Part shown: piece after piece, positions 24,991 through 46,479 of the stretch
Layout: every line of letters starts with the position of its first letter
Numbering within the stretch: the first letter of the stretch is position 1
NCBI GenBank assembly: GCA_950097015.1
Contig: CATNEN010000034.1
Span: forward strand, 5,580,001-5,644,000
Source: Macrostomum hystrix
Lineage: Eukaryota; Animalia; Platyhelminthes
Direction: 5' to 3'
DNA: 64,000 nt
Notes under the pieces: generated by a model
Databases searched by the model: none
Seen by the model: only the letters and a program-made list of their open reading frames with translations
What the model was told of the DNA's origin: nothing
Made by a program: the position numbers and the translations under genes

Positions 24991-25284
24991 TTAAACTTTT
25001 TCGGAGCGTCTTTTATTCCGTCGCGACCTCCATCGGTAGTAGTAGGTCCCTGCCACGACTAGAGCAATCAGCAGTGCGACAAGGATTACAGCAATGCAGG
25101 TCACCTGGCCTTTGCTAATGGTGCATAATTTTCCTGTCCAATCTTTGAGGCATTTGCAATGATACACGTCGGGTTCGATCTTCTCGCAGAAGCTTTCTTC
25201 CGAGCACAAGGCTTGATATTTTTTATATATATGTTCGTGCTCTTCATCGTGCGTGCACCTCCTGGTTGCGTTCGAGCTACTTAA
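24991..25284 (-). pseudogene. EGF-TM microprotein paralogue 1; open frame but TTA where paralogue 2 has its ATG
   Basis: SSSNATRRCTHDEEHEHIYKKYQALCSEESFCEKIEPDVYHCKCLKDWTGKLC, then TM (VTCIAVILVALLIALVVAGTYYY) and RWRSRRNKRRSEKV*. In-frame TAA at 25300-25302 upstream and no in-frame ATG; it could be functional only if spliced from an unseen exon at the AAG/TAG acceptor 25277-25282. Confidence 0.6.
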
Positions 25285-25343
25285 AAAAGCAACGAAAAGT
25301 TATATGTTTAACTGCTATCCAAGCTCAGCCAGTGGGCACAGCT

Positions 25344-25351
25344 TATTTATA
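25344..25351 (-). promoter_or_regulatory. Putative TATA box (TATAAATA) of EGF-TM paralogue 1
   Basis: About 60 nt upstream of the start-codon position; the same motif is conserved at 28719-28726 in paralogue 2 despite diverged surroundings. Confidence 0.5.
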
Positions 25352-25999
25352 TACACAAAGACGATTGAGCCGGAATCGCCGAGGTCCAACCTGCAACCAT
25401 GCACTTGGGCTAGACCAATTAGCCTTTATCAGGCAGTCCTGCTGTCCATATATGACCAATGCTAGGAAGGTTCAGCTCAGAGAGATCACCTAAATTGGGC
25501 ACTATTTATTTTGGCTCGGAACCGGACAATTTGCGGCTAAATAAAAGGGTTGCTATTTAGCCAATACCATTGAAGCGTAAACATTCGATGCAGAACAGCC
25601 CCGCGCATGAGGCGCCCTCAATTCATGTCGCTCGCTTTCAAAAAGCGACAAAAATCTCTCGTTTCGGCGAAAAATGACATGCCTTGTTTGACTTTCATGT
25701 TCTGTTCTGCTCAGTAAATTAATCTCAATTGATGAAGGGACTGAATACTACAGATACTACACTAGTAGACTACTAATGTATACTAGTATCTGCAGAATCA
25801 ACTAACGGCAAAGATATGACATTTTAATCACTTCGCGCACTCGTGCTTTTGCCATTGACGCACTCGTTTTCGTGCAGGAATATTACATTCTAATCATTCT
25901 AATCGTATATAAAGTGCACTCGAAGTAAATGTTTTTAGCTAGGCAGCCTGATTGGCCTCTAAGCAAATAATATCAAATGAGTCTACGATCTGTACCCGT

Positions 26000-27400
26000 A
26001 GAGAACAGATCCGTAGAGAACCACGTACCCGTAGTTCCCGTCTTGGGTGTTAATCCAGTGGCGCATCTGTGCCCTATCGTCTGGAAGAAAGTGTTGGGCA
26101 CACGGACCGTCTTCGGCTTTGATAGACTGCGTTGGGTTTTCTCCTAGTATGTCAGAGCGCGTGTTTTGACTTAGCTTCAGGGTGGTCCTTGGATACAGCT
26201 GGTAGGCGAGAGCCGCCCATTTCGCAAACCCCTGTGGGCCCGCAGACAGGCGGGGCTGCGAATCACAACAAGATGCAAATGAAATTATAGTCAAGTCCTT
26301 TCACCCAATAAAAAGCATGCAATTAAAAAATCAGGTCAGGGTAGTCCGCCGGTCCGTCCTGCAGCGTTGTCTTCCGAGGGGAAGATAATACGTGGATCGT
26401 CTTGTCATCCAAAGGATATCATCAACACGGAGGCCGGCAATGCAGTCCAGCGTCCCGCCTGACAAATGGTAAATTCACTCCAAGCCCTGCTAGAGCTCCG
26501 CATGAAGCAGCGCTCTATCAGGTGCCGAGAACACAAGCGTCAGTGTCGGAAGCTTTGTAGGTTCGGCAGAGCGACAAGAAAGCGCTTCCTTCAGGGCTAT
26601 TAGATGCTGACGAGTCGGATGGCGAGTGCTTGTGACAGAATTTAGCTGGCGACACACCTCAACCAGCTGCTGCCTGCTGGTCTTCTGAATCCTAGTGGCC
26701 CTCCGTCATTACGTGGTCGCCGACATCGTCGTACACAGTGACAGAACGGGGGCCGTCGAAGCGCTGAAATAGCTCAGCGTACCATTCGACGACGTCAATT
26801 GGGTGCTGCACACCCCAATTGCCGGTGACGTGTGGAGCTTTCGGCTGCGGGCCTTCCACGTTCCGCGGATGCCTTTCAGATCGGAAGTGCCTGGGGGACC
26901 CAGTCTCGAGCCTCGCCTTCGACAGCGACGCACAAAGCATATTTTCTTTGCTTTTACCGTAGCCTGAAAGCCTTAGCAGACGACGCCTTGTGCATATCTC
27001 GCTACGCGCGTTGCTCTGCCTCTGCCTCCTTTTTGCTTTTGCAGGTTCAGCACCTTCTGCCTCCTGCCCCTCTCGTCCGCTTCCTGGCTGCCGAGTATCC
27101 AAGCCTTGTACGCGTCGGATTAGGATAAATATTAGCGCTTTTGCCGACTGAAATGCGGGGCCTAGCAGCCTGATGCTCCAAGCTGGCGCAGCTGGTCATC
27201 ATTGGCCGACCGTAAATAACATGACAGTGTACAAGTAGATACACCACCCGACAAAAAGACCCATTCAGCCTGCTGTCGGACCATGCTTTGAGTACAGGCT
27301 TTGCTGGTACAACTGGCCAGCCTGCTGGTCATCCTACAAGAGCGTGCGGATACCGCCTTCTGGAACACATGATGTGCGCTTCCCGCGTTATCTGACCCGC
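26000..27400 (-). other. GC-rich decayed coding-like segment, unidentified (possible transposon remnant)
   Basis: Adjacent partial frames (26692-27102 and a continuation ATRIQKTSRQQLVEVCRQLN...) are broken by stops and shifts; GC is higher than in the flanks; the segment is absent from the duplicated flanks of paralogues 1 and 2. Confidence 0.3.
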
Positions 27401-28356: not shown

Positions 28357-28651
28357 TTAAACTTTTTCGGAGCGCCTTTTATTCCGTCGCGACCTCCATC
28401 GGTAGTAGTAGGTGCCTGCCACGACTAGAGCAATCAGCAGTGCGACAAGGATTACAGCAATGCAGGTCACCTGGCCTTTGCTAATGGTGCATAATTTTCC
28501 TGTCCAATCTTTGAGGCATTTGCAATGATACACTGTCGGGTTCGATCTTCTCGCAGAAGCTTTCTTCCAAGCACAAGGCTTGATATTTTTTAAATATATG
28601 TTCGTACTCTTCATCGTGCGTGCACCTCCTGGTTGCGTTGGAGCTACTCAT
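28357..28651 (-). pseudogene. EGF-TM microprotein paralogue 2 (MSSSNATRRCT...SEKV); one extra base at 28534 shifts the frame (pseudogene or assembly error)
   Basis: Nearly identical to 24991-25284 (295 vs 294 nt). ATG at 28649-28651; plus strand reads CACTGTCGGG here versus CACGTCGGG in paralogue 1. Confidence 0.65.
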
Positions 28652-28718
28652 TTTTGATCGGCAGCAAAATTACAACAAATTTTTTATGTTATCTGATCTG
28701 TGAGATTTGCGCACAGCT

Positions 28719-28726
28719 TATTTATA
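28719..28726 (-). promoter_or_regulatory. Putative TATA box (TATAAATA) of EGF-TM paralogue 2
   Basis: 68 nt upstream of the ATG; conserved with paralogue 1. Confidence 0.5.
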
Positions 28727-30752
28727 CAAAATAGCGACTGATTGAGCTCCAATCGCCGAGGTCTAACCTACGACCGCTGACAAGCCTAGGACTGGACAAA
28801 ATAGCCGGCAGCAACCAGCACTGCTGACCATATTTGTAAATTAATAATGCCTTAGAGATTCGAGATAAATCACCTAAATTGGACAGAATCTATTTCTGTT
28901 GCAAACCAAGAAAAGGCTAGTTTCTATTTAATTAATTCAGTCGAATAAACAAGCTTCAAAGCTAATATGTGTCATCCAAGCAGAAAGGCCCTACGCATGC
29001 GAGGTCCTTAATTCATGTCGCTTGGTTTCAAAGAAAGCCAAACAAGTCTTGCGTGCGCGATGGCTAATGTGTTGGTGTTAAATTTGCTTCAACTAGACAT
29101 TTAGACATAAGCTAGCGGCATGTCAAACATTGGAATTAGCACAATGTTTCTAAAAACATTGAAAGCAAAGTTTTCTTTCGTTTTAAAAAATGTTTTTCAT
29201 TCTTTCCCGTTGGCCACGATGCGATTTTTTTATTAGAGTCAATTTAGCAGCACCAACACAACAAGATCACGGGCAACACCACCTGAAATCTGCTGCTGCA
29301 CCGACGGATCCCAAATCAAGTCCGTCTTTGGACTGGGCTACAGCATTACCTGCATATGCAATCTATTATTTTCTCACAGATAAGCTAAAAATATGTCAGG
29401 GTGTGCAACAAACCCAAAGCTCGGCGATTGCCTCGATTTTGATAATAAAAAAGCAAATGAGCAGCAGGAAATGGAACACCTACTAATGGATTTAGCAGGT
29501 CCTGCGTAATCGGTTTTCGAAGTGCGAACAAAGGAAAAGTGCAACCTGAGTCGCTAAAAATATTCAAGTGCTGAAGCATAGAGCACGGTAGTGCTAAAAA
29601 AATAAAAAACGGTTGTTTACTGCATAATTATAATAGTGAGGATTTACGATCGAGTGCGAATAGATTTATTTGTTTTTTAGTCTGGCGAAAATCGATGTGC
29701 CAGGTGGTATTCTGGCAAAATAGTATTAGTCACAGTTAAAGGAATCGAAGCAGAAGCACTGAAGGCCCTTTTAAATAGGACCACACACTGCAGAATAACA
29801 TAAGCTAACAAGTGTGTCGTCTTTTAAAGCAATAGAAATCTCGCAATTAGTCACCTGCAATCAGAATTGGTTTTATTTCCTGAATAAAACTTTGAATGAA
29901 AAGAATGTTTTGTGAACCATTGTGAGCCATTGAGTGTATTGGCCTATGCAAAGTATAATTCCCTAGGTTGTTAAATTTACAAACAGTAAAAACGACACAA
30001 AACTTACTCTCATTTGAAAAGCCATCAGTTCAAAATACTTCCGACATTCACTCACTTGCAAGACAAGCCAAAAAATAAAGTGCTTTCAAATAAGAATAAG
30101 CACAAAATTTGCAGTCTATCAAAAATCTAAGTTACAGTTTCCGTACGCTACAAAAGTACTCTGTGAAACTTCGACTTTGGATTAAAACTTGTTTGAATAT
30201 GCATACATGTCAACTATACTCAGCATCTAGAAGAATGCTGCTAATTTTCAGAGTGGAAATCAACGCGTTTAATTTCGAGAAAAAGCGGCCATCATTTGAA
30301 TCAGTTTAAGGCCCAGGTAAATTAATTGTGGCACGTGACCAACAAGGACAAACGACAGTAGGAATATTAAAAACCCACGAAATAAAAACATAAATCAATA
30401 GCCCGCTTAGTTTATTCATTGTTTTCACTTTTCTAATTTGCAATGCGAGGCAATCGCATGTCGAAATAATGGTAGGCATTTAGATTTGATGAGCTGAGAA
30501 TCTATATTATACACTATTTAAGGCACATATGTAATGAAGAACCATTTGCAGAGCTTCGAAACAGAACGGTACAATATCTCTACTTGACTAATTTAAATTT
30601 TTCTAGCCGATAATCAGGAGCCCAGGCGTAGCAATCGTTAGCTTAGGGGGGCATAATGTTTCGAAAAAAATATGTTAAACGTCATTCCAAAACATTCTAC
30701 ATCATTTTACGAAGTTTTATGATTTCCGTACTGAACATTGGTCGTTACTTTG

Positions 30753-30803: not shown

Positions 30804-31301
30804 TATATATCCGCACTAAGATGGGTCGTTAAATAAATGTCTAATACGCACGAACCTTTCTGTCCCTTGTTCTTTCCCCTATTCTGCTACTCTCGATCCA
30901 AAGAGTACAGAGTTAAGATATATTTAGCTTGTCCTTAGACTGGACTGGAAGCCCGAGTTCGGTAAGCCTACAGGCAGGTAATGAATTCTGAGCTTGTCCT
31001 CAATTACGAGTATGCGGAGTCAACTAAACTTTTGGATGCTCCAATGATAGTGTTCGCTTGGTCTTACAAGCTCTCAATAATTGGATTAGTGACTGACACT
31101 ATTTCTTAAGCTCACAAAAGGAAATTGTCACGAAAATGAGAGTGGACTAAAGTAATATGAGAAAACTTGCCTAAGAGAAGCCAACTGAGCAAGAAATAAA
31201 TTTAAAGCGGTCACTATGGGACTAGCTGCTAATATACCGGGTGTCAAGCTACAAGAAGAATTGCACAAAAAGCCGTCTCACTCAGGAATCGAAATCCTCG
31301 C

Positions 31302-31637
31302 TCAGCAAGTCTGCGCGCCGTCATCGCCGCCACCTGAGTTGGCTTGAACGCTGCGTTGATTTTTGCGCAAATTAAAGTAAACGAGAAGGACGGCGCATAC
31401 GATAATCAGCAGGATGATGATGCCTACTAGGGGCATGTAGATAGACGTCATGGCCGAGGCGATGCCCATAGAAGGGAAGAAGTCTGGCTCGTTGCACAGC
31501 TGGCCGACCCAGCCTGTCAGGCACTCGCAGTAGTAGGTGCTCGGCTCGATCAGTCTGCAGTAGCCGCCCTCCTGACAGTTGAAGCCATACTTCTCCACTA
31601 TGTACTTCTGCGTCTCGGTCGCCGTGCAGTTGCGCAT
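31302..31637 (-). CDS. EGF-TM microprotein paralogue 3 (111 aa, intact, intronless)
   Basis: MRNCTATETQKYIVEKYGFNCQEGGYCRLIEPSTYYCECLTGWVGQLC gives C-x16-C-x5-C-x9-C-x-C-x8-C, followed by a TM segment (PLVGIIILLIIVCAVLLVYF) and RKNQR. In-frame TGA three codons upstream of the ATG. Confidence 0.85.
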   Translation of the reverse strand: MRNCTATETQKYIVEKYGFNCQEGGYCRLIEPSTYYCECLTGWVGQLCNEPDFFPSMGIASAMTSIYMPLVGIIILLIIVCAVLLVYFNLRKNQRSVQANSGGGDDGAQTC

Positions 31638-33375
31638 TGTGCGTCAGATTGCTTTTCGTAAGAACTGTGGAATTCAGAAAATTGTTTATGCAGCTTGAAC
31701 ATTGACTTCCAGTCGTGAGAAACGCATCGTGTCTATCATTTGGCAAATATTTGGTTCTACGACAATATATATTTTTGTCGATAAAATTACGTGTAATACG
31801 GCAAGAATAAGCATGGAAAGAAGAGTAATTGCACATCAGAATGAGTTTACTTCGTATTTCATAAGTTTCTATTTGAGGAATATCGAGTATAAACAAATCT
31901 ACATAAAATTATATACCTAGTTGAGTTATAATTAAATTTACATATACCAGGAGTTCATTTCATCTAATACTCAAATTTTCAAATTTAAGAATCAATTTAT
32001 ATTTGATTGGTTTAAATCTTCTCCACCAAAAGTTTTTTAAGATTTATAAAAAGGTCTCAATTCTCTGTACCATTGTCATGGGTTCTGATTTAACAGCTCG
32101 CGATAGCAGGAGAAGCCGTCTCAGATTAGACTCAGGGCTGCTCATTCGGCCAGACTTGTATGAGGTACTAAGGTATGGCAATCAATCAATAGATTAACTT
32201 TCAAGCCGAGTCGTCAATGCTATTTCATTTGAAAACTTCAGCAATGGATTCATAATCAACTGTCCAGTACCAATACCATATTTTTTCAGAAACAAATTAG
32301 CAGCCCTTACCTCAAGACTTGCTAGCAGATCCGCGATTTGCAGTTGAAGTCAAATGCAGTGAGCAAAAATTGGCTTGGGTGGCTGGCCTGCAGCTTCGCA
32401 GTTTAGCCAAAGTTATCGTAATCTGTATAGATAAAAGGCAAGGTAGGTCTAAGCGCTGCCAATGTGCTGGTTAGGAGAAAGGCGAGATGCAGTGAAGGCA
32501 GTCACCGCTCATGTAAGACTTGCCTTTAATAAGCGAAATCTGTTACATTGCCATATGGAAGACTCTTATCAGCGAAAATGTACACTTAGGTTAATGTGCA
32601 GTATTGTTTAGAGTTTTTATAAGACAGTGAATGAAATCAAAATGGGGTGGATGACACTTTTTGGCGTTGGCGTTAAAATGCTATGTGCATTGATTGTGCG
32701 ATTTTGCACAAATTAAGTAGAGGGTCTAAAGCGCGCCTATAAATAATTGTGAGGTCATTGTACCTGCAGCCAACACTGTACCTACACTGGAAGTAAGCTG
32801 GCCAATTTAAAATTTAGCTCCTTCAGCCGATCAGTCAGTCGGCGTAGGTAAATTTATTACCCAGGTAGCTGAGAACTTTTTTTGCATAGCCAGTTCTTTT
32901 AAATAACCTATATGCGTAGCTGCTGTATCCGAGCGAAGTTTTATTGTAAAAAAACATATAATATCACATTTTTTAGCTTACATTCTGCGACTTATTGTCG
33001 AAACACATTTTTGTTCGAGTAGTTTGTCTCAGAGTTCAGTTCAGCTGCGTTCAGTGAGTTTTCTGACAATAATAAGCGAATTATTTTAAGTTTAGGCTCT
33101 AGGTGATTTCCTACATCTCATTTTAGCTTTTTTCCTGTACAGTCATATGCGCCAGTGAAACTCATTAAAAAGTTTGTAATTTCTAGAGGAATCCGCAAGA
33201 GTAGCAAATGCGCAGAGAACTATTTTAATTGATGCTTTTTTATTAGCAGGAAATTCAGCTTATTGAACTTGGATTCAACAAATATTCTATCTGCAGCGAA
33301 CCTAAAGTTTAGTTAGAAAATGTTTCGAGTGTAAGTGCTTAGAGTGTACTCTTCGAAATCCTTTTATTTAATAAA

Positions 33376-33790: not shown

Positions 33791-35515
33791 CCTCGCCGGG
33801 GCCAACTCAACTTAATGAAACAATTTATAAAGCAATAGTATATAGTAAAAAACAGAGTCTATACCTTTGAATCTATCGATGGAGGTGATCGCGCGGACTC
33901 TCTCGAGTCAAGCTTTGAATTCCTTTTTAGGAAATGTAGCAAAAAGTTAGAAAAGGAATTAATATAGAATATAGAACTTTCAATAATGAAATTCGCTTTT
34001 CTGTAATTTCTGCAAGCCGTTTGAGCAGGATATTAAATTTCTTTCGCGTACTTTCGCACTTCAATACTAGCGTCCACATGCTTGTCATAGCGCTTACCAT
34101 AGACAATCGTACAAAAGCACCACTACTTCCTCGTTCCGCCCGTTATTTTGTAGTAACCCACTTTAGGTTACTGAATTAAACAGTGTTCAAATAGAATTAT
34201 ATGCACAAAAAGCATCATGCATCATCCCATAAAAATAGCCAGAAATCATTTTCCTTTTCAGTCTCAATCTCGGTTTTCAATCTTACCATAGACAATAAAC
34301 TGAGTACATGTATCTTATAGAATGTACATTAGTCTCTCCAATTCTCTCTCCGAAAGTCAGAAGCAGAGGCGACAGGAAAGCAAGGGTCTGAAGCTGAGCG
34401 TGTCTAAATTGAATGATGGGTGTCTAAATTGAATATGTGCTTTGTCTCAGAACTAGAATTTTTACCATAGACAAATCGCTCTCAATGAGGAAGTGTTTTA
34501 ATTGAATATCCACTGTCTAAATCGAATATCTGCTGTTTAAATTGAAGTCAGCTTTGTCTAATTTGAACGTCCAACTGAAGGTATAAAAATAGAGTGTCGA
34601 AGATGAATGTCAAGTTGTCTAAATTGCAGCGCAGATTTGTTGAAATTTAACGGGAAAAGGTGTAGTAAAATGGTACAAGTTTGACAAAAATAGGCCAAAC
34701 AGTTTACTATCAAATGTGGATTATACATACAAAGGTACCAACTTTAGTATATAGAATACGTCAAGTACTCATAAGCTTTACTGCTCAAGTTTAAATTATT
34801 AAGACTTAGCGTATAGATATGGACACACTACACTAGTTCGTAAGATATCATAATTTTAGTCTACTTAAATTAGTGAATTACAACGAAGTTTATATCAATA
34901 TGAGAATCTTTCAAGCCAATGCATTTCACTTCTACGAAAGAAAATTTCATTTAATTAATTCTAAGTTTCTAAGTTAAATCGACAAAGTAAGTGATAGCAC
35001 TTTTATGCAGTGGCTATTCAAAAATAATTTTGCCGCAAAATAATACCTTCACTTAATTAACTACAAAATGATCGACTTTACTTCAAATCACTTAAAATCA
35101 CTTTCGGCCACAGTCAGGACAGGCTTTATGGCTATCCAGATGTAATATTTTTTGCGAAGTGTACAATCTCTGGGCGTACTGTTGATAAGTACAGGTAGCT
35201 CCTGTTCTTTTTTATATTTACCAAAACAACAGTGGAGTGTCAGGCACAGAAAAAATACTCCTAAGGCTTTCAATTCGTAGCAGATGGTTAGATTGTCGGG
35301 AGAGTATGGCACAAAAAAGGAATGCAATTTAACTAAGGCACTCGTAGCAGAAACAGTTTGGGACAGTAAAAGTTTAGCTGAAATGATATGGACCAGTTAG
35401 TAGGATCACAATAAATGTACTGAAGCGCCGATCAGTTCGTTGGCTTCAACGTTATTCCTGCATGCCTCTAGTTTGAAAACCAGCATCTTGAATGCACTGA
35501 TTGGAAACTGGTCAT

Positions 35516-35893
35516 CTAAACCGCGGGCTGCTGCTGCTTGTCATCCTCAGGACGCCGCTTCTTCTTCAAGACGCCGCTTTCGCCTTGTTGCCGCTGTCTA
35601 AAAACAAAGTAGAGTGTTATGATCAGGACCACAGTGAGCAGCAGGATGCAGATGCTGAGCATAGCTAGCTTATCAGCTAGCAGCATGGAAGCCGCATATC
35701 GAATCTTTTTTGATGGCATGTTGCAAACTTCGGTGCAGATGTTGCCGCAAAACGGTGCGGGGCAGACGCATTCGTATCCTTTTCGAACTTGACCGTGACC
35801 CAGGACGACCCGGCAAAAGCCACCTTCTTGGCACTCGTAACCGTAGACATCTTTGATGTATTTCTGTGCCTCGTCGGCAGTGCAGTTAACCAT
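35516..35893 (-). CDS. EGF-TM microprotein paralogue 4 (125 aa, intact, intronless, two extra Cys)
   Basis: MVNCTADEAQKYIKDVYGYECQEGGFCRVVLGHGQVRKGYECVCPAPFCGNICTEVC, followed by a TM segment (LAMLSICILLLTVVLIITLYFVF) and a basic tail ending QPAV*. Confidence 0.85.
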   Translation of the reverse strand: MVNCTADEAQKYIKDVYGYECQEGGFCRVVLGHGQVRKGYECVCPAPFCGNICTEVCNMPSKKIRYAASMLLADKLAMLSICILLLTVVLIITLYFVFRQRQQGESGVLKKKRRPEDDKQQQPAV

Positions 35894-36983
35894 TTCAATC
35901 TGTCAAAGTTTATCAGTCTAGCAAACCGCTTGCGTTAACAACTTTTAGAAGCTTCCTCGATTTCTCTCTCGTTCTAGCCTAATTTTGCAAGATACCGTTG
36001 CGCACAGTCTTTCGCTGCGACATTACCTTTTGTAGAAAATTTTCCAAAACAGTAGTGGCGGTAGGCTAAACAGCCACCTCAAATTTAAATCGATGCCAAG
36101 TAGACTATGCGCTCACTGTCTGTCTTCCGCTCTGTCTGAAACCGGCCCGCTCCAGTCAGCATTGCAGGTGTTATCAAGTATCTACACCAGCTTAGGAAAT
36201 CACTGGAACTGGCCAACACTTGTAGCCATTTTGTTTGATGTCTATCTTGCGCTACGCGTGCTATTCTTTCTCATGACAAATATGGTTTACCATCTGACAA
36301 ACGCTTAGCTGGTGTTACTAACACCCGCCTAAATTTTACTTGCCAATTTTAGTCAAGGGAAATTCCGAGTTTTCCTTCGCTAAAGCTGAAATTCTATATT
36401 TAAATCGAGATGCATGGATGCTAAACGGATTTTCTATAAATTGACTATTTAGAACACTGAATGGTTCCGACTGTTCAGATCAAGATTTGCGAAAACTTTG
36501 AAGCTCTCATGCGGTCCAGGTTTGTGTAGGAGTCCATGGCATTTGATAGCTTACAAGCCTTGATGTCCACTTGTCCACTATTAAAAAATGTACATTTGCG
36601 CTGTATTTCTCAACGGTACTCTGCCTGTCTGGCCCATTTTACTGCTCACCAACAAGATCTGAACTGTTTTAGCCACTTAAACAAATCTACTCAAGACTTC
36701 CGCAAAGAGAATAGACATCGCCAGACCAATCAGCTTCTAAATGGAGGTAAAATTAGTCCAGATAAAGTGGTCCAAGCAAACCGCTGGAAAATTACCCTTA
36801 CTCTTATAAGCCTATTGTCGTTTACAGCTCTTCAGAGATTTTAACTTGGTACCTAAATCAATTTTATGGGCCTAAATATTATATTGCAAAATCAAAAGCA
36901 TTTGAATTTGACGTTCATTTGAATATGCCTTAAACTCATCCATTCCCAATCGCCATAATGATCGATCACTGAATTATAGACTC

Positions 36984-38393
36984 GTGTACGCCTACGTGAT
37001 TCAGTTGTGTACTCCTGTGTGATTCAGTTGTGTACTCCTGTGTGATTCAGTTGTGTACTCCTGTGTGATTCAGTTGTGCACTCCTGTGTGATTAAGTTGT
37101 GTACTCCTGTGTGATTCAGTTGTCTTCTCCTGTGTGATTCAGTTGTGTACTCCTGTGTGATTCAGTTGTGTACTCCTGTGTGATTCAGTTGTGTACTCCT
37201 GTGTGATTCAGTTGTGTACTCCTGTGTGATTCAGTTGTCTGCACCTCTGTAATTCAGTTGTGTACTCCTGTGTGATTCAGTTGTGCACTCCTGTGTGATT
37301 CAGTTGTCTTCTCCTGTGTGATTCAGTTGACTACTCCTGTTTGATTCAGTTGTGTACTCCTGTGTGATTCAGTTGTGCACTCCTGTGTGATTCAGTTGTC
37401 TTCTCCTGTGTGATTCAGTTGACTACTCCTGTGTGATTCAGTTGTGTACTCCTGTGTGATTCAGTTGTGTACTCCTGTGTGATTCAGTTGTGCACTCCTG
37501 TGTGATTCAGTTGTGTACTCCTGTGTGATTCAGTTGTGTACTCCTGTGTGATTCAGTTGTGTACTCCTGTGTGATTCAGTTGTGTACTCCTGTGTGATTT
37601 AGTTGTGTACTCCTGTGTGATTCAGTTGTCTGCACCTCTGTAATTCAGTTGTGTACTCCTGTGTGATTCAGTTGTGTACTCCTGTGTGATTCAGTTGTGT
37701 ACTCCTGTGTGATTCAGTTGTGTACTCCTGTGTGATTCAGTTGTGTACTCCTGTGTGATTCAGTTGTGTACTCCTGTGTGATTCAGTTGTGTACTCCTGT
37801 GTGATTCAGTTGTGCACTCCTGTGTGATTCAGTTGTGTACTCCTGTGTGATTCAGTTGTGTACTCCTGTGTGATTCAGTTGTCTGCACCTCTGTAATTCA
37901 GTTGTGTACTCCTGTGTGATTCAGTTGTGTACTCCTGTGTGATTCAGTTGTGTACTCCTGTGTGATTCAGTTGTGCACTCCTGTGTGATTCAGTTGTGTA
38001 CTCCTGTGTGATTCAGTTGTCTGCACCTCTGTAATTCAGTTGTGTACTCCTGTGTGATTAAGTTATGTACTCCTGTGTGATTCAGTTGTGCACTCCTGTG
38101 TGATTCAGTTGTGTACTCCTGTGTGATTCAGTTGTGTACTCCTGTGTGATTCAGTTGTGCACTCCTGTGTGATTCAGTTGTGTACTCCTGTGTGATTCAG
38201 TTGTCTTCTCCTGTGTGATTCAGTTGTGTACTCCTGTGTGATTCAGTTGTGCACTCCTGTGTGATTCAGTTGTGTACTCCTGTGTGATTCAGTTGTGTAC
38301 TCCTGTGTGATTCAGTTGTGTACTCCTGTGTGATTAAGTTGACTACTCCTGTGTGATTAAGTTGTGTACTCCTGTGTGATTCAGTTGTGTACT
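36984..38393. repeat. 23-bp satellite, left arm (~61 units; consensus GTGTGATTCAGTTGTGTACTCCT)
   Basis: Direct 23-bp periodicity (TCAGTTG at 37001, 37024, ...) with recurring variant units. Confidence 0.95.
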
Positions 38394-38580
38394 TGTGTTG
38401 TACTTTTATATGTGTTGTACTTTCATTATATAGAAACTAGTATTTGACCGTTGCAGCTAAATATCCCATAGACAATTCGTTCTACCTGTTTGTTTGCGAG
38501 GACCGCGTTAAGAGTGTTTGCGGCTCTAGCTTTCGTGCTAACCCCGGGCTTTGCTATCTACACAAATACATTAGACCACA
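38394..38580 (+). repeat. 5' LTR (187 bp)
   Basis: Identical to the 3' LTR except for a 2-bp AT indel near the start. Confidence 0.95.
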
Positions 38581-38603
38581 AGCTATCGCGGCAATACGCA
38601 ACG

Positions 38604-39314
38604 ATGGCAAGCGCAGTCAAATTCAGCGACATAATCAAGCAGTACGACGGTGAAGAGGATTTTTCGCGCTGGGCACAGAAGCTCGAACTCGTTGCCAAGC
38701 TCCAAAAAGTGAATGACCTGGCTGCTTTCATCCCACTATTTCTATTGGGAGGTGCGTTCGCCGTGTACCAGGCACTAAACGAGGAAAGCAAGTCGGACTA
38801 CAAAACTCTGAAAGCGGCTCTTACCTCAGCGTTCTGCCCAAACAAGTACAAAGCATACGACGAGTTCGTGTCACGCAGGCTCGGCCCCGGGGAGTCCGTG
38901 GACGTTTTTCTCGCGGATCTCACGAGGCTTGCACGCCTAGTGGACGAGATCCCCGGGGAAGAATGGATCAAATGCGCATTCGTCCGCGGGCTTCCAGCAA
39001 CCGTCAGTCAGCAGCTGATCGCTTCCTGCTCTCTAAAAGAGCTCGAACTCCATGAACTAGCGGAGAAAGCTAGAAACTTAACGATCAGTCGCGAGTCCTG
39101 CTGTGTTGTCTCGAGCGCAGGAAATGCGCGAAGCGCTGGAAAGTTCGCCCCACGCAACAAAGTGATGTCGTGCTACTCGTGCGGCAAGGAGGGCCATGTG
39201 AGCAAAGAGTGCATGGAACGCAACCGAGCGAATCAAGGTTGTTTTGTTTGTGGAAAAGCGGGACATGTGGCTGCTCGATGCCCGCAGCGCGCCGATTTTC
39301 AAAAAAACGAGTGA
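38604..39314 (+). CDS. gag: Gag with two CCHC zinc knuckles
   Basis: MASAVKFSDIIKQYDGEEDF...; CYSCGKEGHVSKEC and CFVCGKAGHVAARC. Confidence 0.92.
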   Translation: MASAVKFSDIIKQYDGEEDFSRWAQKLELVAKLQKVNDLAAFIPLFLLGGAFAVYQALNEESKSDYKTLKAALTSAFCPNKYKAYDEFVSRRLGPGESVDVFLADLTRLARLVDEIPGEEWIKCAFVRGLPATVSQQLIASCSLKELELHELAEKARNLTISRESCCVVSSAGNARSAGKFAPRNKVMSCYSCGKEGHVSKECMERNRANQGCFVCGKAGHVAARCPQRADFQKNE

Positions 39315-42300
39315 TGGAAGCGCGGAATGTTTGCGCCAACGGGCTTCCTTGTGCACCGGCGCACCTACCATCGTTAAGTGTTCATGTTAATAGTTTGGTC
39401 GTTACTGCTTTAGTAGATACTGGTTGTTCGCGGTCCATCGTTTCTTCACGAGTTACTGGAGTTAAAAAACGTCCCGTTCACGAGAGGGTCACGATGATGA
39501 ATGGTGACTCAGCAGAATGTGAATGGGAGGCTGACGTTACTTTGTCTGTTCGAGGCCACCAATTACCAGTGCTGCGATGTATCGTTATGGACATCCTTCC
39601 TGGGTTCGATTTGCTGCTTGGGATGGATGCTATCAGCCGATTGGGCGGTGTCTCTGTGAAGCGAGATTGCCGCAGTGTCCGCTTCGGTATTGAAGAGCAG
39701 TCATTAGCGCTGGAGACTGCTGCGGTAGCCAAGGCTTTCTCAAAACCAAAGGCGGAGTCACCTGTGAGCTGTCCGGCAGGAGAGGTCGAGTCACCTGTGA
39801 GCTGTCCGGCAGGAGAGGTCGAGTCACCTGTGAGCTGTCCGGCAGGAGAGGTCGAGTCACCTGTGAGCTGTCCGGCAGAAGAGGTCGAGTCACCTGTGAG
39901 CTGTCCGACAGGAGAGGTCGAGTCACCTGTGAGCTGTCCGGCAGGAGAGGTCGAGTCACCTGTGAGCTGTCCGGCAGGAGAGGTCGAGTCACCTGTGAGC
40001 TGTCCGGCAAGAGGAGCGAGGCTTGCGAAAAATACTTTAACCGAGGCGTGCCTGGTGCTTGAGGAAAAAGACTTCTCTGCTAAGTTTATCGATGGAGAGT
40101 GGACAGTGGCATGGAAGTGGCTGGATGAGGACCCACTACTGTCAAATACGATAGCTCAATACCGAGTCCCACCAGAGGCGGTAGGCGAGTATGAGTCAGA
40201 GATAAAAGACTGGATTCAGCGAGGTTGGCTGCTACCGTTCGAAGGTGACAGTGACGGCGTCATCCCTCTGATGGCAGTGGTGCAGACCAACAAAGCAAAG
40301 GTGCGGCCTGTACTCGACTATCGCGAGTTGAACCAGTACGTGTCAAGCCACACCGCCGAAAGCGTCGTGTGCGGCGCCAAGCTCCGGGCCTGGCGGCGGC
40401 TCGGTGAGAATGCGAGTATCATCGACCTGCGGAAGGCCTACCTACAACTGCGATTGGACCCCAGTCTCTGGCGCTACCAAGTAGTGAGGTTCAAAGGCCG
40501 CCGTTACTGTCTCACCCGGTTAGGATTCGGACTCAACGTGGCGCCAAAAATTATGACGGCGGTTGTGAACAAAGTCCTGTCGATGGAAGACGACGTGCGT
40601 GAGGCCACGGACTCTTACATTGACGACATTATTGTGAACAATAGCAAGATTCCGAATGAACGCGTAACTGGGTTGCTTGCCCGGTTCGGGCTAGAAGCCA
40701 AGCCTCCTGAGAGCCTCATTGGGGGCCGCGTGCTCGGCCTCCGCGTCTACCGTCGAGAGGATGGGGTCATTTGCTGGAAACGAGACAATGTCCTCTCTCA
40801 GTTGAAAGGTCCAGCAACACGACGGCAACTATTCTCCTGGTGCGGCCAGCTAGTAGGCCATTTCCCCGTCGCCGCATGGCTGCGTGTCGCATGCAGCTAC
40901 TTGAAGCGGGTCACCAGCACAATCGCGTGGGACGCTATCGTCAGCGAGTCTGCCATGCGGATCGCCCAAGAAATCAGCGAAATGGTCCAGGAACGAGATC
41001 CTGTCGCTGGGGTGTGGACCGTTGACGAGACTTCGCGCTGTCGCGTCTGGTGCGACGCCAGCAGCATCGCCATTGGAGCCGTCATCGAATTTGGTGGCGT
41101 AATCGTGGAGGACGCCTCGTGGTTGCGAAAACAAGACGACGCTGCGCACATCAATCTTGCCGAACTTGAGGCGGTCCTCAAGGGTATCAACCTTGCCCTC
41201 GCTTGGGGTACGAGGAAAGTTGAAGTGTTGACTGATTCTGCAACCGTGCACGGCTGGCTCCAGTCTTTGATTGTCGGCGATAAGCCCGTGCGAGTCAAAG
41301 GTCTCGGTGAAGCTCTGGTTCGGAAACGGCTATCATTAATCCGAGACACGGCGTCGGAGTGCGAGCTCGAGCTACTGACATCGCTGGTGCCATCTTCAGC
41401 AAACAAGGCAGACGCACTGACGCGAGTACCGCAACAGTGGCTGCGCCAGCGGCCCTTCTGTGCAGTGGCGCTGCGCCCCGTTGACATGGATCTCCGTGCG
41501 TGCCACGAGAAGCACCACTTCGGGGTGGACAGGACGCTCTACCTGGCCAAACTGTGCTTCCCTGAACGTGAGGTACTGCGTGAAGAGGGTGAGCGCATCG
41601 TTGCAAACTGCATCCGATGCAAGTCCGTAGACCCTGCGCCGATGGTTTGGGACCATGGCAGACTCGAGGTGGATGCAAACTGGTGGCGCTTGGCCTGCGA
41701 CGTGACCCACTTTAAGGACGACCGCTATCTGTCCATTGTTGACTGCGGGCCGAGCAGATTCTCGCTGTGGCGAAAACTCACCGACGAGCGGACAGCGTCA
41801 ATTACCGGGATACTCGTGCAGGTGTTCCGAGAGCGGGGCCCTCCCTGGCAGCTGCTTCTGGACAATTCACCGACCTTCCGCTCCGCTGAGGTCCGTGCGT
41901 TTTGTGAGGCTTGGGGAGTGCAGCTCCTCTTCCGTTGCGCTCAACGGCCGTCAGGCAACGGAATAGTCGAGCGCAATCATCGGACGATTAAGCGGATGGC
42001 AGCCAGAACCGGAAAGGACGTACTGGAAATGGTGTTCTGGTACAACATGGCTCCAAAGGATGGCACTCGCAAGGACAGCGTGCCCAGCAGAATGGTCAGC
42101 ACCTATGACTGGAAGCCGCCAACTGTGTCTCTCCCTGAGGCCTTGGAGACCTTGGAGGCAAACCCCACCCTGCCAGTGGGAACAGAAGTGTTTGTTAAAC
42201 CGCCGGCCGTCAGATGCACCGACGAGTGGCCTAGGGGACGCGTGACGGGCCAGGGACAAGGGTCTACGGTGGAGGTCGATGGCCTTCCCCGTCACGTAGC

Positions 42301-42424
42301 TGACGTCCGCCCGGCACCAGACACGCAACCGCAGCCTCCTGGGGTGGAGCGAGCTGTCGAGCGGGATGCCGAACCACGACGGTCTAATAGGGTGAAGTCG
42401 GCGCCGGTCCGTTACGAACCTTGA
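39299..42424 (+). CDS. pol: Pol polyprotein: aspartic protease, 11-aa repeat linker, reverse transcriptase, RNase H, integrase
   Basis: LVDTGCS (PR), YIDDII (RT), WCDAS...AELEAV...TDS (RNase H), H-x3-H...C-x2-C, LACDV, LLDNSPTF, NGIVER (integrase); uninterrupted ORF. Confidence 0.95.
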   Translation, partial: SKKRVMEARNVCANGLPCAPAHLPSLSVHVNSLVVTALVDTGCSRSIVSSRVTGVKKRPVHERVTMMNGDSAECEWEADVTLSVRGHQLPVLRCIVMDILPGFDLLLGMDAISRLGGVSVKRDCRSVRFGIEEQSLALETAAVAKAFSKPKAESPVSCPAGEVESPVSCPAGEVESPVSCPAGEVESPVSCPAEEVESPVSCPTGEVESPVSCPAGEVESPVSCPAGEVESPVSCPARGARLAKNTLTEACLVLEEKDFSAKFIDGEWTVAWKWLDEDPLLSNTIAQYRVPPEAVGEYESEIKDWIQRGWLLPFEGDSDGVIPLMAVVQTNKAKVRPVLDYRELNQYVSSHTAESVVCGAKLRAWRRLGENASIIDLRKAYLQLRLDPSLWRYQVVRFKGRRYCLTRLGFGLNVAPKIMTAVVNKVLSMEDDVREATDSYIDDIIVNNSKIPNERVTGLLARFGLEAKPPESLIGGRVLGLRVYRREDGVICWKRDNVLSQLKGPATRRQLFSWCGQLVGHFPVAAWLRVACSYLKRVTSTIAWDAIVSESAMRIAQEISEMVQERDPVAGVWTVDETSRCRVWCDASSIAIGAVIEFGGVIVEDASWLRKQDDAAHINLAELEAVLKGINLALAWGTRKVEVLTDSATVHGWLQSLIVGDKPVRVKGLGEALVRKRLSLIRDTASECELELLTSLVPSSANKADALTRVPQQWLRQRPFCAVALRPVDMDLRACHEKHHFGVDRTLYLAKLCFPEREVLREEGERIVANCIRCKSVDPAPMVWDHGRLEVDANWWRLACDVTHFKDDRYLSIVDCGPSRFSLWRKLTDERTASITGILVQVFRERGPPWQLLLDNSPTFRSAEVRAFCEAWGVQLLFRCAQRPSGNGIVERNHRTIKRMAARTGKDVLEMVFWYNMAPKDGTRKDSVPSRMVSTYDWKPPTVSLPEALETLEANPTLPVGTEVFVKPPAVRCTDEWPRGRVTGQGQGSTVEVDGLPRHVADVRPAPDTQPQPPGVERAVERDAEPRRSNRVKSAPVRYEP
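39302..39365 (+). promoter_or_regulatory. -1 programmed ribosomal frameshift signal (A AAA AAC plus downstream stem/pseudoknot)
   Basis: Gag codons CAA AAA AAC GAG TGA; pol is in the -1 frame. After a 7-nt spacer GGAAGC pairs with GCTTCC, and TGCGCC can pair with GGCGCA. Confidence 0.75.
39755..40009 (+). repeat. 33-bp in-frame tandem repeat (ESPVSCPAGEV x ~8) inside pol
   Basis: GAGTCACCTGTGAGCTGTCCGGCAGGAGAGGTC, 7 full units plus 1 partial unit. Confidence 0.95.
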
Positions 42425-42453
42425 TCTCTTGTGATCCGGAGATCAGGGGGTGA

Positions 42454-42638
42454 TGTGTTGTACTTTTATGTGTTGTACTTTCATTATATAGAAACTAGTA
42501 TTTGACCGTTGCAGCTAAATATCCCATAGACAATTCGTTCTACCTGTTTGTTTGCGAGGACCGCGTTAAGAGTGTTTGCGGCTCTAGCTTTCGTGCTAAC
42601 CCCGGGCTTTGCTATCTACACAAATACATTAGACCACA
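42454..42638 (+). repeat. 3' LTR (185 bp)
   Basis: Matches 38394-38580; followed by TSD GTACT and resumption of the satellite in register. Confidence 0.95.
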
Positions 42639-44069
42639 GTACTCCTGTGTGATTCAGTTGTGTACTCCTGTGTGATTCAGTTGTGTACTCCTGTGTGATT
42701 CAGTTGTCTGCACCTCTGTAATTCAGTTGTGTACTCCTGTGTGATTCAGTTGTGTACTCCTGTGTGATTCAGTTGTGTACTCCTGTGTGATTCAGTTGTG
42801 TACTCCTGTGTGATTCAGTTGTGTACTCCTGTGTGATTCAGTTGTGTACTCCTGTGTGATTCAGTTGTGTACTCCTGTGTGATTCAGTTGTGTACTCCTG
42901 TGTGATTCAGTTGTCTGCACCTCTGTAATTCAGTTGTGTACTCCTGTGTGATTCAGTTGTGTACTCCTGTGTGATTCAGTTGTGTACTCCTATGTGATTC
43001 AGTTGTGTACTCCTGTGTGATTCAGTTGTGTACTCCTGTGTGATTAAGTTGTGTACTCCTGTGTGATTAAGTTGTGTACTCCTGTGTGATTCAGTTGTGT
43101 ACTCCTGTGTGATTAAGTTGTGTACTCCTGTGTGATTCAGTTGTGTACTCCTGTGTGATTCAGTTGTGTACTCCTGTGTGATTCAGTTGTGTACTCCTGT
43201 GTGATTCAGTTGTCTACTCCTGTGTGATTCAGTTGTGTACTCCTGTGTGATTCAGTTGTGTACTCCTGTGTGATTCAGTTGTGTACTCCTGTGTGATTCA
43301 GTTGTGTACTCCTGTGTGATTCAGTTGTGTACTCCTGTGTGATTCAGTTGTGTACTCCTGTGTGATTCAGTTGACTACTCCTGTGTGATTCAGTTGTGTA
43401 CTCCTGTGTGATTCAGTTGTGTACTCCTGTGTGATTAAGTTATCTACTCCTGTGTGATTCAGTTGTGTACTCCTGTGTGATTCAGTTGTATACTCCTGTG
43501 TGATTCAGTTGTGTACTCCTGTGTGATTCAGTTGTGTACTCCTGTGTGATTCAGTTGTGTACTCCTGTGTGATTAAGTTATCTACTCCTGTGTGATTCAG
43601 TTGTGTACTCCTGTGTGATTCAGTTGTGTACTCCTGTGTGATTCAGTTGTCTGCACCTCTGTAATTCAGTTGTGTACTCCTGTGTGATTCAGTTGTGTAC
43701 TCCTGTGTGATTCAGTTGTGTACTCCTGTGTGATTCAGTTGTGCACTCCTGTGTGATTCAGTTGTGTACTCCTGTGTGATTCAGTTGTCTGCACCTCTGT
43801 AATTCAGTTGTGTACTCCTGTGTGATTCAGTTGTGCACTCCTGTGTGATTCAGTTGTGCACTCCTGTGTGATTCAGTTGTGTACTCCTGTGTGATTAAGT
43901 TGTGTACTCCTGTGTGATTCAGTTGTGTACTCCTGTGTGATTAAGTTGTGTACTCCTGTGTGATTCAGTTGTGCACTCCTGTGTGATTCAGTTGTGTACT
44001 CCTGTGTGATTCAGTTGTGCACTCCTGTGTGATTCAGTTGTCTTCTCCTGTGTGATTCAGTTGTGTACT
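42639..44069. repeat. 23-bp satellite, right arm (~62 units)
   Basis: Same consensus and variant units as the left arm. Confidence 0.95.
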
Positions 44070-44874
44070 TTTATGTTGTCTGCTTACCATTTTTCAGAGC
44101 CATTTTACTTACGTGGCTGAATGCTCTGATAAATATCATTTATCAGATCCTAACACGTCAGTGTTAGGTTATCGAATAGAGATTAGTGTGAAATATTTTA
44201 AGGCTCAGCTGGTCAAAATGCCTGAAATTTTAGTTGTTTATCGAAGGCCACCAGATAAATAAATAAAGAACAATTACTACTTAAAGTAGTATACAAAGCA
44301 GATGTGCTTTGAATTGTGCAGAATTATAGCTAATTGCTAATTATTGTCTATTAGACTGATCATATGGTACGACATCGTGGCACAAAATAGACAATTAGTT
44401 ATGTTCTCGTAACTTTACCAAAGCCAGAGTCAGATCAAGCGTCCTATTTTTAGTGTAATAAACCAATATAGAGAAGCGGAATGTCCTTAAGATCAGTTAG
44501 GAAATTGTGATTTAAAACTTGGGCGGACAGGCAGCGCAAAATATAAAAGTGTTTAACTTTTAAACTAAATGCAAGAGGCGGGGAGCTTTCAGCAAGAAGT
44601 CTATTGTTATATAGCAGTGGGCGAATAAAGTTCAATGATTTGAAAAAAGCTATAGTGCTGCGAACGGAAAGTACACGTATTTAACGTGAAAAAGTCATTT
44701 ACAAAACAAGACTTTTGCAGCAAGGTTAAAACAAATTAGCGAACAAGAAGAGGACTGTTCTTATATAGCAGCATGCATGCGACAAGTTTTTGTGGGTGTT
44801 ATAACAAGCTTGGAATTAAGCAGCTGTAGGCTACACGGCTGGTGCACCTAATTACATCGTCCGTATTTATATAT

Positions 44875-45293
44875 CAGGGGTAGGCAAACTTATTTGCTGG
44901 CGGGCCAAAGAGAGAACCTATAAGACGGCAGCGGGCCGCATTGAATGTATAAATATGAGATAGGAGAGAGATGAGACACGGGAGAGATGAGACACGGGAG
45001 AGATTAGACACGGGAGAGATAAGACAGGGGAGAGATTAGACACGGGAGAGATGAGACACAGGAGAGATTAGACACGGGAGAGATTAGACATGGGAGAGAT
45101 TAGACACGGGAGAGATAAGACACGGAAGAGATTAGACACGAGAGCGATGAGACACGGGAGAGATTAGACACGAGAGAGATTAGACACGAGAGAGATGAAA
45201 CAGGACACTGTAGATGTCAGAAGGGGCAACGGGCCGGATTTGGGAGCTTCGAGGGCCGCATCTGGCCCGCGGGCCGGAGTTTGCCGACCCCTG
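44875..45293. mobile_element. hAT-type MITE (419 bp) with 8-bp TSD TTATATAT and an internal 16-bp minisatellite
   Basis: TIRs CAGGGGTAGGCAAACT / AGTTTGCCGACCCCTG; TSD at 44867-44874 and 45294-45301; GGGAGAGATTAGACAC x ~14-15 at ~44965-45205. Confidence 0.9.
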
Positions 45294-46009
45294 TTATATA
45301 TGGTAAAAAATTATAAACATGCTTTGCCGAGATGCTCATTATTACGGCACAAATTGTTTTTTGACTATACGGTCATAAACTAGGATTTTAGCCGAAATTA
45401 AAATGGCTTTGGAAATTAGGCGACGCACTCATTTTGTTGGTACATTTGTATAAGGTCTGTCGATATTCGAAACAACTTCGCGCATATCGAAACTTAAACT
45501 TTGTTCTAAGTGTTAACTTGTTTCAGTTGAGAAATCGGCTCCGTTATTAGCAAAAACTCGTTAGTTTTCTTCGCTTACCAATTTGCGAGCTTTCAGGTTT
45601 AAATAAGGGACTAGTCAGGGAATATGCTAAAGAGTGTAGATAGCAAGTGATAAGAGGGTTAACAAAGCATATAGGAAATTTGTAGCTTTGAGAAATAATA
45701 TCAGCAATCAAACAAAGTATAGTTATAGTTTAGATTAGTTGGAGATTTCACGAAATTAAATTCGGAAACTAAATCTTTCGGAAATGAAAGATACGTAAAG
45801 TATTGATTAGAAAGCTATTCCATGGCTGACAGGTCTCGGTCGGTTGCGGTCTATGTGTTCCATCAAGTTCTACCCTGGATATGGTCAACCAGTCCAAGTA
45901 TTTTTGGATGCCTTGACCTATAGTCTAAATTCAGTTAGACTATCTGTGTCTGTGCAAGGCTGCATGAATTTGTAATGACTACGAGTACGAGTAGTGCTTA
46001 AGAATAGCA

Positions 46010-46479
46010 TCAGGCTAAGTATTCTTTGCGCTGCGAACCGGTTTCGCAGTTCCACACTGATTGTAGCGGCGGTGTTGGCTCTGAGTTCAGCGGAGCTGCT
46101 GTCCCGCTAACCGGTCGGTAGATTGGCTGGTTGCCGCGCCGGTTGACGAGCGGGTTGCCGCTCTGCTCGCGTCTCTCGCGCTCCTTATTATCCTGGCGCC
46201 GACGATGACGCCTAACCAGGAAAAATATAACAATGCAAAGCACAACAATAGCGATAATCACCACCAGGGGTATGACCACAACAATTTTTAGATCCGCTGC
46301 GCCCAAGGAAATCCGGCGTATCGCATATGTCATTCTTCCAGCCAGGTAGGCACTGGCAGAATAGCTTGCCGTGTGGCATCCTTCTGCAGTAGCCGCCCTC
46401 CTGGCAGTAGCTGTGCAGCTGGAGTCGCAAGCCTCTCACGCTCATCCACTGTGCAGTTAGTTACTCCGTAGTCGGACAT
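46010..46479 (-). pseudogene. EGF-TM microprotein paralogue 5, split over three frames (two frameshifts; pseudogene or assembly errors)
   Basis: Frame 1 MSDYGVTNCTVDERER; frame 2 LRLQLHSYCQEGGYCRRMPHGKLFCQCLPGWKNDICDTPDF; frame 3 SLGAADLKIVVVIPLVVIIAIVVLCIVIFFLVRRHRRR...EYLA*. Confidence 0.7.

Follow-up and report, generated by a model that had tools for sequence, protein, structure and literature searches.

Small EGF-transmembrane proteins encoded in tandem in Macrostomum: a probable signal-peptide-less family and its possible role as EGF receptor ligands

Ligand precursors with a single epidermal growth factor (EGF) module next to a transmembrane (TM) segment are known from vertebrates and invertebrates, and one of the invertebrate examples, Spitz, has a signal peptide. 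Pro-neuregulin-4 (pro-NRG4), a protein of ~115 amino acids (aa), has no signal peptide. Its only EGF module lies near the N-terminus in a short ectodomain with N-glycosylation sites, and one TM segment and a short tail follow (PMC8064692). The planarian ligands Smed-egf-1 to -5 and -8 carry one EGF module directly upstream of the TM segment, and planarian EGF receptor (EGFR) ligand genes all contain introns (PMC4914847). In Echinococcus, the ligands EmEGF and EmNRG have signal peptides (PMC12963305). A survey of Macrostomum lignano reported eight EGFRs and only two ligands (PMC4914847). Here we consider a 64,000-nucleotide (nt) stretch of the Macrostomum hystrix genome (contig CATNEN010000034.1, positions 5,580,001 to 5,644,000; hereafter the window), in which an earlier note had proposed five intronless, rapidly diverging EGF-TM microproteins without signal peptides. 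We conclude with high confidence that the cluster belongs to a conserved family of signal-peptide-less EGF-TM proteins, restricted to Macrostomum as far as databases show, whose members may be ligands for the worm's EGFRs.

The comparison with neuregulins made in the earlier note is apt, because pro-NRG4 has the same architecture. Vertebrate NRG4 and the Macrostomum proteins have in common the lack of a signal peptide, a sole EGF module, a TM segment, a short tail and a length of ~110-150 aa. They differ in that no sequence similarity extends past the generic EGF core (a profile search otherwise returned generic multi-EGF proteins), in that the segment between the first two cysteines (Cys1-Cys2) has 15-16 residues and is predicted to be helical where NRG4 has 7, and in that Leu or Ile, not Arg, precedes the sixth cysteine (Cys6). 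NRG4 has been shown to bind ErbB4. With Spitz, Gurken, Keren and the planarian and Echinococcus ligands the family shares a single EGF module next to the TM segment, and Spitz and gurken-like proteins are among its neighbours in the structural searches described below; in contrast to EmEGF and EmNRG, the mini-proteins have no signal peptide, and their cysteines are spaced differently from the ligand consensus. Notch-type hEGF repeats have the same core, CQxGGxC...CxCxxG[FW]xGxxC, and the last EGF module and TM segment of LamG-EGF-TM proteins of the same genome give the next-best match, but those proteins and Notch are long, multi-domain, equipped with signal peptides and devoid of the N-C-T-x-x-E helix extension. 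The family also resembles type III, N-exo signal-anchor proteins in having no cleavable signal peptide, a short, acidic to neutral N-terminal domain and a basic cluster after the only TM segment, although few proteins of that class translocate an N-terminus with a folded, disulfide-rich module of ~50 residues. On the available models, the family is best placed with single-EGF, membrane-anchored precursors of the NRG4 type, with a predicted helical, glycosylated Cys1-Cys2 insertion as its distinguishing feature.

Five minus-strand paralogues, here called c1 to c5, lie where the earlier note had placed them (Table 1); only c3 and c4 are intact, the other three being damaged. The cysteine pattern proposed for them, C-x16-C-x5-C-x9/14-C-x-C-x8-C, holds up: in the form C-x15/16-C-x5-C-x9..14-C-x-C-x8-C it is uninterrupted in three copies (c1, 25123-25257; c3, 31494-31628; c4, 35735-35884), against no match in 100 shuffles of the window. 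The reported sequons (NAT in c1 and c2; NCT in c3, c4 and c5) and C-termini (SEKV in c1 and c2, then AQTC, QPAV and EYLA) were likewise found. The six cysteines and an N-C-T-x-x-E motif are invariant in all seven family sequences, with a Met 1-7 residues before N-C-T in every case and in both species. Spacing from the second to the sixth cysteine is canonical for EGF, and the Cys1-Cys2 segment is unusually long (15-16 residues; 9 in the protein P0070 described below). Against the Pfam EGF model (PF00008), c3 scores 21.5 bits, exactly the cut-off, while c4 (18.5) and c1 (13.4) are both below it, and the family has no neuregulin-specific Pfam match. The best single-domain match by sequence in the PDB is heregulin-alpha (28 bits), followed by an EGF/TGF-alpha chimera (27.6 bits); by these comparisons, the family sequence reads as generic EGF. 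In c4, the loop between the third and fourth cysteines has 14 residues, and two additional cysteines, also found in its M. lignano orthologue, suggest a fourth disulfide.

Table 1. Positions of the paralogues, their transcripts, neighbouring elements, M. lignano orthologues and receptor clusters (window coordinates unless another contig is named)
Feature	Position	Strand	Description
c1	24991..25299	(-)	frame open through SSSNATRRC...SEKV, without start codon
c2	28357..28651	(-)	ATG at 28651-28649, NAT sequon, one frameshift
TATAAATA motif, c1	25344..25351	(-)	within tataaataagctgtgc block common to c2, ~60 nt upstream of c1 start-equivalent codon
TATAAATA motif, c2	28719..28726	(-)	counterpart of c1 motif, upstream of c2
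c3 exon 1	32311..32462	(-)	non-coding, at least 152 nt, without any ATG
c3 intron in 5' untranslated region	31665..32310	(-)	646 nt, GT..AG (gag|gtaagg ... ccacag|ttc)
c3 exon 2	31200..31664	(-)	contig-covered; continues 187-245 nt past 31200 into 3' untranslated region
c3 coding sequence	31302..31637	(-)	ATG-to-stop intact, 111 aa, C-terminus AQTC
c3 residues			NCT sequon 3-5; predicted helix 6-17; EGF core 21-48; TM ~66-90; then basic stop-transfer
c4 transcript-like contig	35153..35998	(-)	846 nt, unspliced, 100% identical to window
c4 coding sequence	35516..35893	(-)	ATG-to-stop intact, 125 aa; NCT sequon, TM, tail ending QPAV
c5	46010..46479	(-)	three pieces in three frames
c5, N piece	46479-~46432	(-)	ATG and NCT
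c5, EGF piece	~46430-46314	(-)	EGF module
c5, C piece	46300-46010	(-)	TM and tail ending EYLA
LTR (long terminal repeat) retrotransposon	36984-44076		lies between c4 and c5
Retrotransposon gag reading frame	38490-39314		zinc knuckles
Retrotransposon pol reading frame	39170-42424		protease, reverse transcriptase, RNase H, integrase
c5 orthologue	M. lignano NIVC01001952.1		P0014/P0151 (PAA62311/PAA55319), intact 151 aa, ends KEYLA
c4 orthologue	M. lignano NIVC01001952.1		P0150 (PAA55318/PAA62310), 8.4 kb beyond c5 orthologue
c3 orthologue	L033:18232-18555 (NIVC01001952.1)		intact 108 aa, 78% identical, ~8 kb beyond c4 orthologue, uncalled
Receptor L-domain matches (many clustered), M. hystrix	contigs C1 (24.5-27.4 Mb), C9 (1.03-1.09 Mb), C3, C15, C39		tandem clusters

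Searches of the 220-Mb assembly containing the window, and of protein collections, indicate how far the family reaches. In its own genome, the family profile matches c1 to c4 at E = 1e-8 to 3e-56 and the EGF piece alone of c5 at E = 5.6e-4; its N-terminal 20 positions are matched by the five loci only, all other matches beginning at the second cysteine (~position 20). These matches, together with the absence of the cysteine pattern from shuffled sequence, bear out a real paralogous family. Among 1.84 billion representative proteins, 277 matched at E <= 0.001, nearly all of them multi-EGF proteins, and two matched end to end: P0002 (117 aa, E = 4e-27) and P0014 (151 aa, E = 1.7e-11), both from M. 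lignano and annotated as hypothetical or as 'EGF-like domain-containing'. One further protein, P0070 from a marine metatranscriptome, has an M-x4-N-C-T-x-x-E start, an EGF module, a TM segment and a basic tail. With the whole architecture found only in these three proteins, the family is lineage-specific, as the earlier note had supposed. A word-index protein search found nothing with c3 and, with the seven-sequence profile, only three sequences already known. Literature searches by M. lignano gene identifiers and for Macrostomum EGFR ligands found no description of the family, only the Barberan survey being relevant, and the family motifs were absent from the sequence supplement of PMC4914847, a check made imperfect by its optically recognized text. 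A more distant EGF-TM relative lies beside a long tandem repeat on contig C37 of M. hystrix (2832111-2832392, L003, and 2836120-2836329); it shares a C-D-E-P-D-F motif after the last cysteine, has neither an ATG nor the N-C-T helix, and is, judging by its sequence, probably an internal or terminal exon.

Synteny extends the family to a second species. On M. lignano contig NIVC01001952.1, orthologues of c5, c4 and c3 follow one another in the same order and orientation as in M. hystrix. That such small genes are missed by annotation is true in part: the c3 orthologue is uncalled, and the other two of the three, Mlig022086 and Mlig002914, are annotated as hypothetical. The annotated first exon of the c4 orthologue (L033:9990-10160) ends in ATG (actcaATG|gtgagt) and is followed by an intron of ~150 nt; this exon contributes one Met and is either a true cis exon or related to a spliced leader.

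Structural searches point toward ErbB ligands. The AlphaFold2 model, from an alignment only seven sequences deep, gives an ectodomain at a per-residue confidence (pLDDT) of 83-90 with a short N-terminal strand, a helix at residues 6-17 and two EGF hairpins, and the TM helix is modelled too; the Cys1-Cys2 'x16 loop' is predicted to be an alpha-helix packed on the EGF fold. When the ectodomain model was compared exhaustively with 48,161 PDB representatives, counting rows less than 1 Z apart as tied, epiregulin took the first two ranks (Z 5.1 and 5.0), followed by NRG1-beta (4.9), Spitz (4.5), HB-EGF (4.5), TGF-alpha (4.3) and NRG1-beta again (4.2), with clotting-factor and Notch EGF modules ranking below the ErbB ligands. 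Foldseek against the PDB gave generic EGF matches only, none at E <= 1e-3. In the ESM Atlas, the nearest entries by shape were gurken-like, proHB-EGF and proNRG1/2, all at a TM-score below 0.5, and the nearest clusters by language-model features were tomoregulin-1-like, pro-NRG4 (0.90) and gurken-like; both lists serve as leads only.

Potential receptors are numerous. At least 45 receptor L-domain matches occur in the M. hystrix genome, many in open frames of ~580 aa in tandem clusters. Complete EGFRs in single open frames of 1087-1584 aa were found at C1:22.19 Mb, C38:13.99 Mb and C25:7.35 Mb and in ~seven copies in the contig C9 cluster, and at four inspected loci, one of them in that cluster, the receptors are intronless and contain L-domain, furin-like, domain IV and tyrosine kinase regions. 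This EGFR-like repertoire is unusually large, and most of it lacks introns. Co-folding of the c3 ectodomain (residues 1-60) with domains I-III of one intronless EGFR (L036) scored 0.00 with the supplied alignments unused, and is evidence neither way.

The reading we place first, that the cluster is a tandem Macrostomum family of membrane-anchored EGF-type ligands for worm EGFRs, receives from us a probability of roughly 0.45; the narrower proposal that the intact members function as EGFR ligands is tentative, and falls a little short of an even chance. Several observations weigh against a ligand role. The ErbB-ligand consensus, C-x7-C-x4/5-C-x10-13-C-x-C-x8-C, does not fit the Cys1-Cys2 segment (15-16 residues) or the stretch between the third and fourth cysteines, where c1, c3 and c5 have 9 residues, outside the consensus range, and c4 has 14. 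Arg just before Cys6 is near-universal in ErbB ligands (compare G39 and R41 of human EGF); the residue in this position is Leu or Ile in all members of the family, and the Gly that is likewise conserved shortly before Cys6 is present in c1, c3 and c4. For a domain of 50 residues, a Z between 4 and 5 is no more than a common arrangement can give, and many of the ranked rows are tied. Notch1 repeats score ~21 bits each, with an EGF core up to 48% identical (Notch1 EGF6), and the next-best genome matches are the last EGF module and TM segment of LamG-EGF-TM open reading frames of 380-470 aa on contig C2. To these must be added the damage to three of the five copies (c1, c2 and c5) and the unrecorded library type of the runs behind the transcript-like contigs.

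Some of these points fit better the strongest alternative, in which the family is a real, conserved type III EGF-TM family of recognition, adhesion or regulatory surface molecules, derived from a partial LamG-EGF-TM duplication that acquired a new helical N-terminus; we regard this as a serious possibility that nevertheless falls clearly below even odds. Matches outside the cluster start near profile position 20 and correspond to the terminal EGF module and TM segment of the contig C2 frames, the core CQEGGxC...CxCxxGWxGxxC is Notch/hEGF-like, and the Arg before Cys6 is absent. Moreover, the two species share the cytoplasmic ends KEYLA (c5) and Q-[ST]-C (c3), a conservation that suggests intracellular partners. 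Against this alternative, precursors of ErbB ligands come first in the searches by fold, by shape and by features, and EGFRs exceed known ligands. In addition, C-x3-D-F follows Cys6 in c3, c5 and the contig C37 relative, and resembles the C-x3-D-L that follows Cys6 in EGF and TGF-alpha.

The damaged copies raise a different question, namely whether the whole cluster is decaying and functionless, with its transcripts mere noise. In c1, a TTA (25284-25282) stands at the position matching the c2 ATG, a TAA (25302-25300) closes the frame upstream, and no in-frame ATG, GTG or TTG precedes the EGF module. A spliced leader supplying c1 with an ATG was considered and rejected, as both candidate acceptors lead into stops when inspected by eye. 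In c2, a 1-bp insertion at ~28534 relative to c1 splits the EGF module between the third and fourth cysteines and puts the TM segment and SEKV tail in the +1 frame downstream, while c5, aligned with its M. lignano orthologue (151 aa, intact), shows one +1 shift at ~46430 and another at 46306-46312. Because of these frameshifts, the EGF module of c2 and c5 exists only when read across the breaks. None of the three indels lies within a long homopolymer, so they are probably real, which favours decay. Copies c1, c2 and c5 are either recently disabled in the M. hystrix genome or assembly errors, and the c5 frameshifts must be one or the other, recent or assembly errors. The likeness of c1 and c2 is also recent in character: they are 97.7% identical over 311 bp coinciding with the coding region (24972-25281 on the c1 side; dS, the synonymous divergence, ~0.05), and their flanks are ~81-88% alike or unalignable (25333-25392 versus 28708-28769, 81%), a pattern produced by gene conversion or very recent duplication. 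Upstream of both copies, ~60-70 nt from the start position, lies a shared TATAAATAAGCTGTGC block, and the TATAAATA motif upstream of c1 is a candidate core promoter.

Selection argues strongly against wholesale decay. By the Nei-Gojobori method, comparing M. hystrix copies with their M. lignano orthologues, c3 has a nonsynonymous divergence (dN) of 0.127 and a dS of 1.01 (ratio 0.13), and the three pieces of c5 have dN of 0.05-0.13 and dS of 0.66-1.6 (ratio ~0.05-0.16); c4 has a dN of 0.39, a saturated dS and 50% amino-acid identity. By these values, c3 and c5 are under purifying selection and only c4 evolves fast, so that the rapid divergence attributed to the family as a whole finds no support. 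The terminal residues that had been likened to PDZ-binding ends are also less persuasive across species, given that QPAV of c4 corresponds to EEAS in M. lignano, which leaves KEYLA (c5) and x-Q-[ST]-C (c3) as the only conserved ends. With such ratios at dS ~1, intact M. lignano orthologues for c3, c4 and c5, invariant cysteines and sequon, and c3 and c4 both intact and transcribed (c3 also spliced), decay of the whole cluster is improbable.

Topology is a further point on which the readings part. A hydrophobic N-terminal segment is absent from all seven sequences, each of which contains a single strongly hydrophobic 19-mer. The next 15 residues carry a net charge of +3 to +7, except in c4, where the value is +1 and KKKRR follows further along; the N-terminal domain has 58-75 residues and a net charge of -5 to +1. 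On the strength of charge and hydropathy, of the six invariant cysteines and of the conserved sequon, we infer an N-out, C-in reverse signal-anchor (type III) topology, as the earlier note had proposed, and the N-C-T sequon is probably glycosylated. The opposite orientation, a type II insertion leaving the cysteine module in the cytosol and not disulfide-bonded as an EGF, could draw on the lack of a signal peptide and on the K/R just before the TM segment of c4; it is very improbable, as the basic cluster is C-terminal of the TM segment in seven of seven sequences, the N-terminal domain is acidic to neutral, the six invariant cysteines and conserved sequon make sense only in the lumen, and the EGF fold is predicted with confidence.

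Transcript-like contigs define the gene structure of the two intact copies. Reads were examined over 31200-37100, which covers c3 and c4, in runs whose library type is unrecorded; the contigs, which come from two studies, differ from the window at very few positions or none and cover only gene-sized stretches, and we take them as RNA because of a canonical spliced joint and gene-shaped coverage. The spliced c3 contig is the same in two runs, and its joint recurs in a third run from the other study, so that runs X4, X5 and X2 all show it. In c3, exon 2 has 27 nt of 5' untranslated region (UTR) before the ATG; these contain no AUG, and an in-frame TGA stands three codons ahead of the start, as the earlier note had observed. 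In c4, the 5' UTR has no AUG and an in-frame TGA lies 4 codons ahead of the ATG. All three M. lignano orthologues likewise have an in-frame stop 3-4 codons before the start. With no earlier ATG and with stops in the same exon, the first AUG opens the EGF-TM reading frame in both c3 and c4, and no upstream exon extends it, which upholds the absence of a signal peptide. The proposal that the genes are intronless stands for the coding sequences, which have no introns, and fails for the c3 transcript with its intron in the 5' UTR. Among the findings that, according to the earlier note, would undo it are lack of expression and membership in larger genes; for c3 and c4, transcript-like contigs cover both, with no upstream AUG and a stop in the same exon. 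Exact-protein look-ups of c3, c4 and P0002 gave no contigs. One low-depth contig (run X1) joins the c4 3' end to 34947-34873, skipping 536 nt; its non-canonical joint (34947/35484) has no GT..AG on either strand and was set aside as a chimera or deletion variant.

That the reading frames are terminal exons of larger genes supplying a signal peptide or further domains is the least credible alternative, for what speaks for it (the upstream exon of c3 at 32311-32462, a possible acceptor, ttttttaag, in c1 where the ATG is expected, and the internal-exon look of the ATG-less contig C37 relative L003) is outweighed by the lack of an ATG in that c3 exon and the in-frame TGA ahead of the ATG in exon 2, by the unspliced c4 contig with its TGA 4 codons upstream, by stops 3-4 codons upstream in three of three M. 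lignano orthologues and by the Met 1-7 residues before N-C-T in both species, so that an upstream signal peptide was rejected for c3 and c4.

If the proteins are membrane-anchored EGFR ligands, as in the reading we place first, their biogenesis might run as follows. The first AUG of the c3 and c4 mRNAs would open a protein of 111-125 aa without a cleavable signal peptide, and the single hydrophobic segment with its basic cluster would act as a reverse signal-anchor (type III, N-out/C-in), bringing the N-terminal domain of 58-75 residues into the lumen of the endoplasmic reticulum. There, the N-C-T sequon would be glycosylated, three disulfides (four in c4) would lock the EGF fold, and the long Cys1-Cys2 segment would form an alpha-helix lying against the beta-hairpins. 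Once at the cell surface, the product would present one EGF module on a short stalk, the architecture of pro-neuregulin-4 and of Spitz/Gurken-type precursors, and the c3 and c4 proteins could act on some of the numerous EGFRs of the worm as EGF-type ligands, either juxtacrine or shed.

Other elements of the window lie around the cluster. The LTRs of the retrotransposon between c4 and c5 (36984-38393 and 42639-44069) consist mostly of tandem arrays with a period of ~23 bp, and its pol frame contains an 11-aa repeat, SPVSCPAGEVE, at ~39755-40013. At 33741-33792, an element of ~50 nt, loose-ended on either side, occurs in dozens of otherwise unrelated transcript-like contigs (X4, X5, X1); it is a repeat both dispersed and transcribed. 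ARAGORN found no tRNA at this place, and a tRNA scan of the whole window found none. Fragmented PIF1-like helicase reading frames (PIF1, Pif1_2B) recur with a period of ~8.4 kb on the minus strand over 48143-62336, and have the appearance of Helitron-type elements, tandem or nested. Two giant A-rich open frames, of 2235 and 1460 aa, occupy 10775-21866.

Macrostomum is a model for regeneration and stem-cell biology, and EGFR signalling governs growth in tapeworms as well as differentiation and regeneration in planarians. If the proteins are not ligands, they are an ordinary lineage-specific EGF-TM family of modest interest. A bolder version of the ligand reading, in which the family is the missing macrostomid ligand set, made up of signal-peptide-less type III EGFR ligands in which a glycosylated alpha-helix has taken the place of the receptor-facing A-loop and which co-expanded with the unusually large, mostly intronless EGFR repertoire, strikes us as doubtful; if true, it would explain the eight receptors against two ligands of the M. 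lignano survey. The family would, in addition, be a small, naturally occurring example of the export of a glycosylated domain rich in disulfides by a protein that has no signal peptide. Given that the survey found far fewer ligands than receptors, a conserved, transcribed and uncharacterised NRG4-like family provides concrete candidates.

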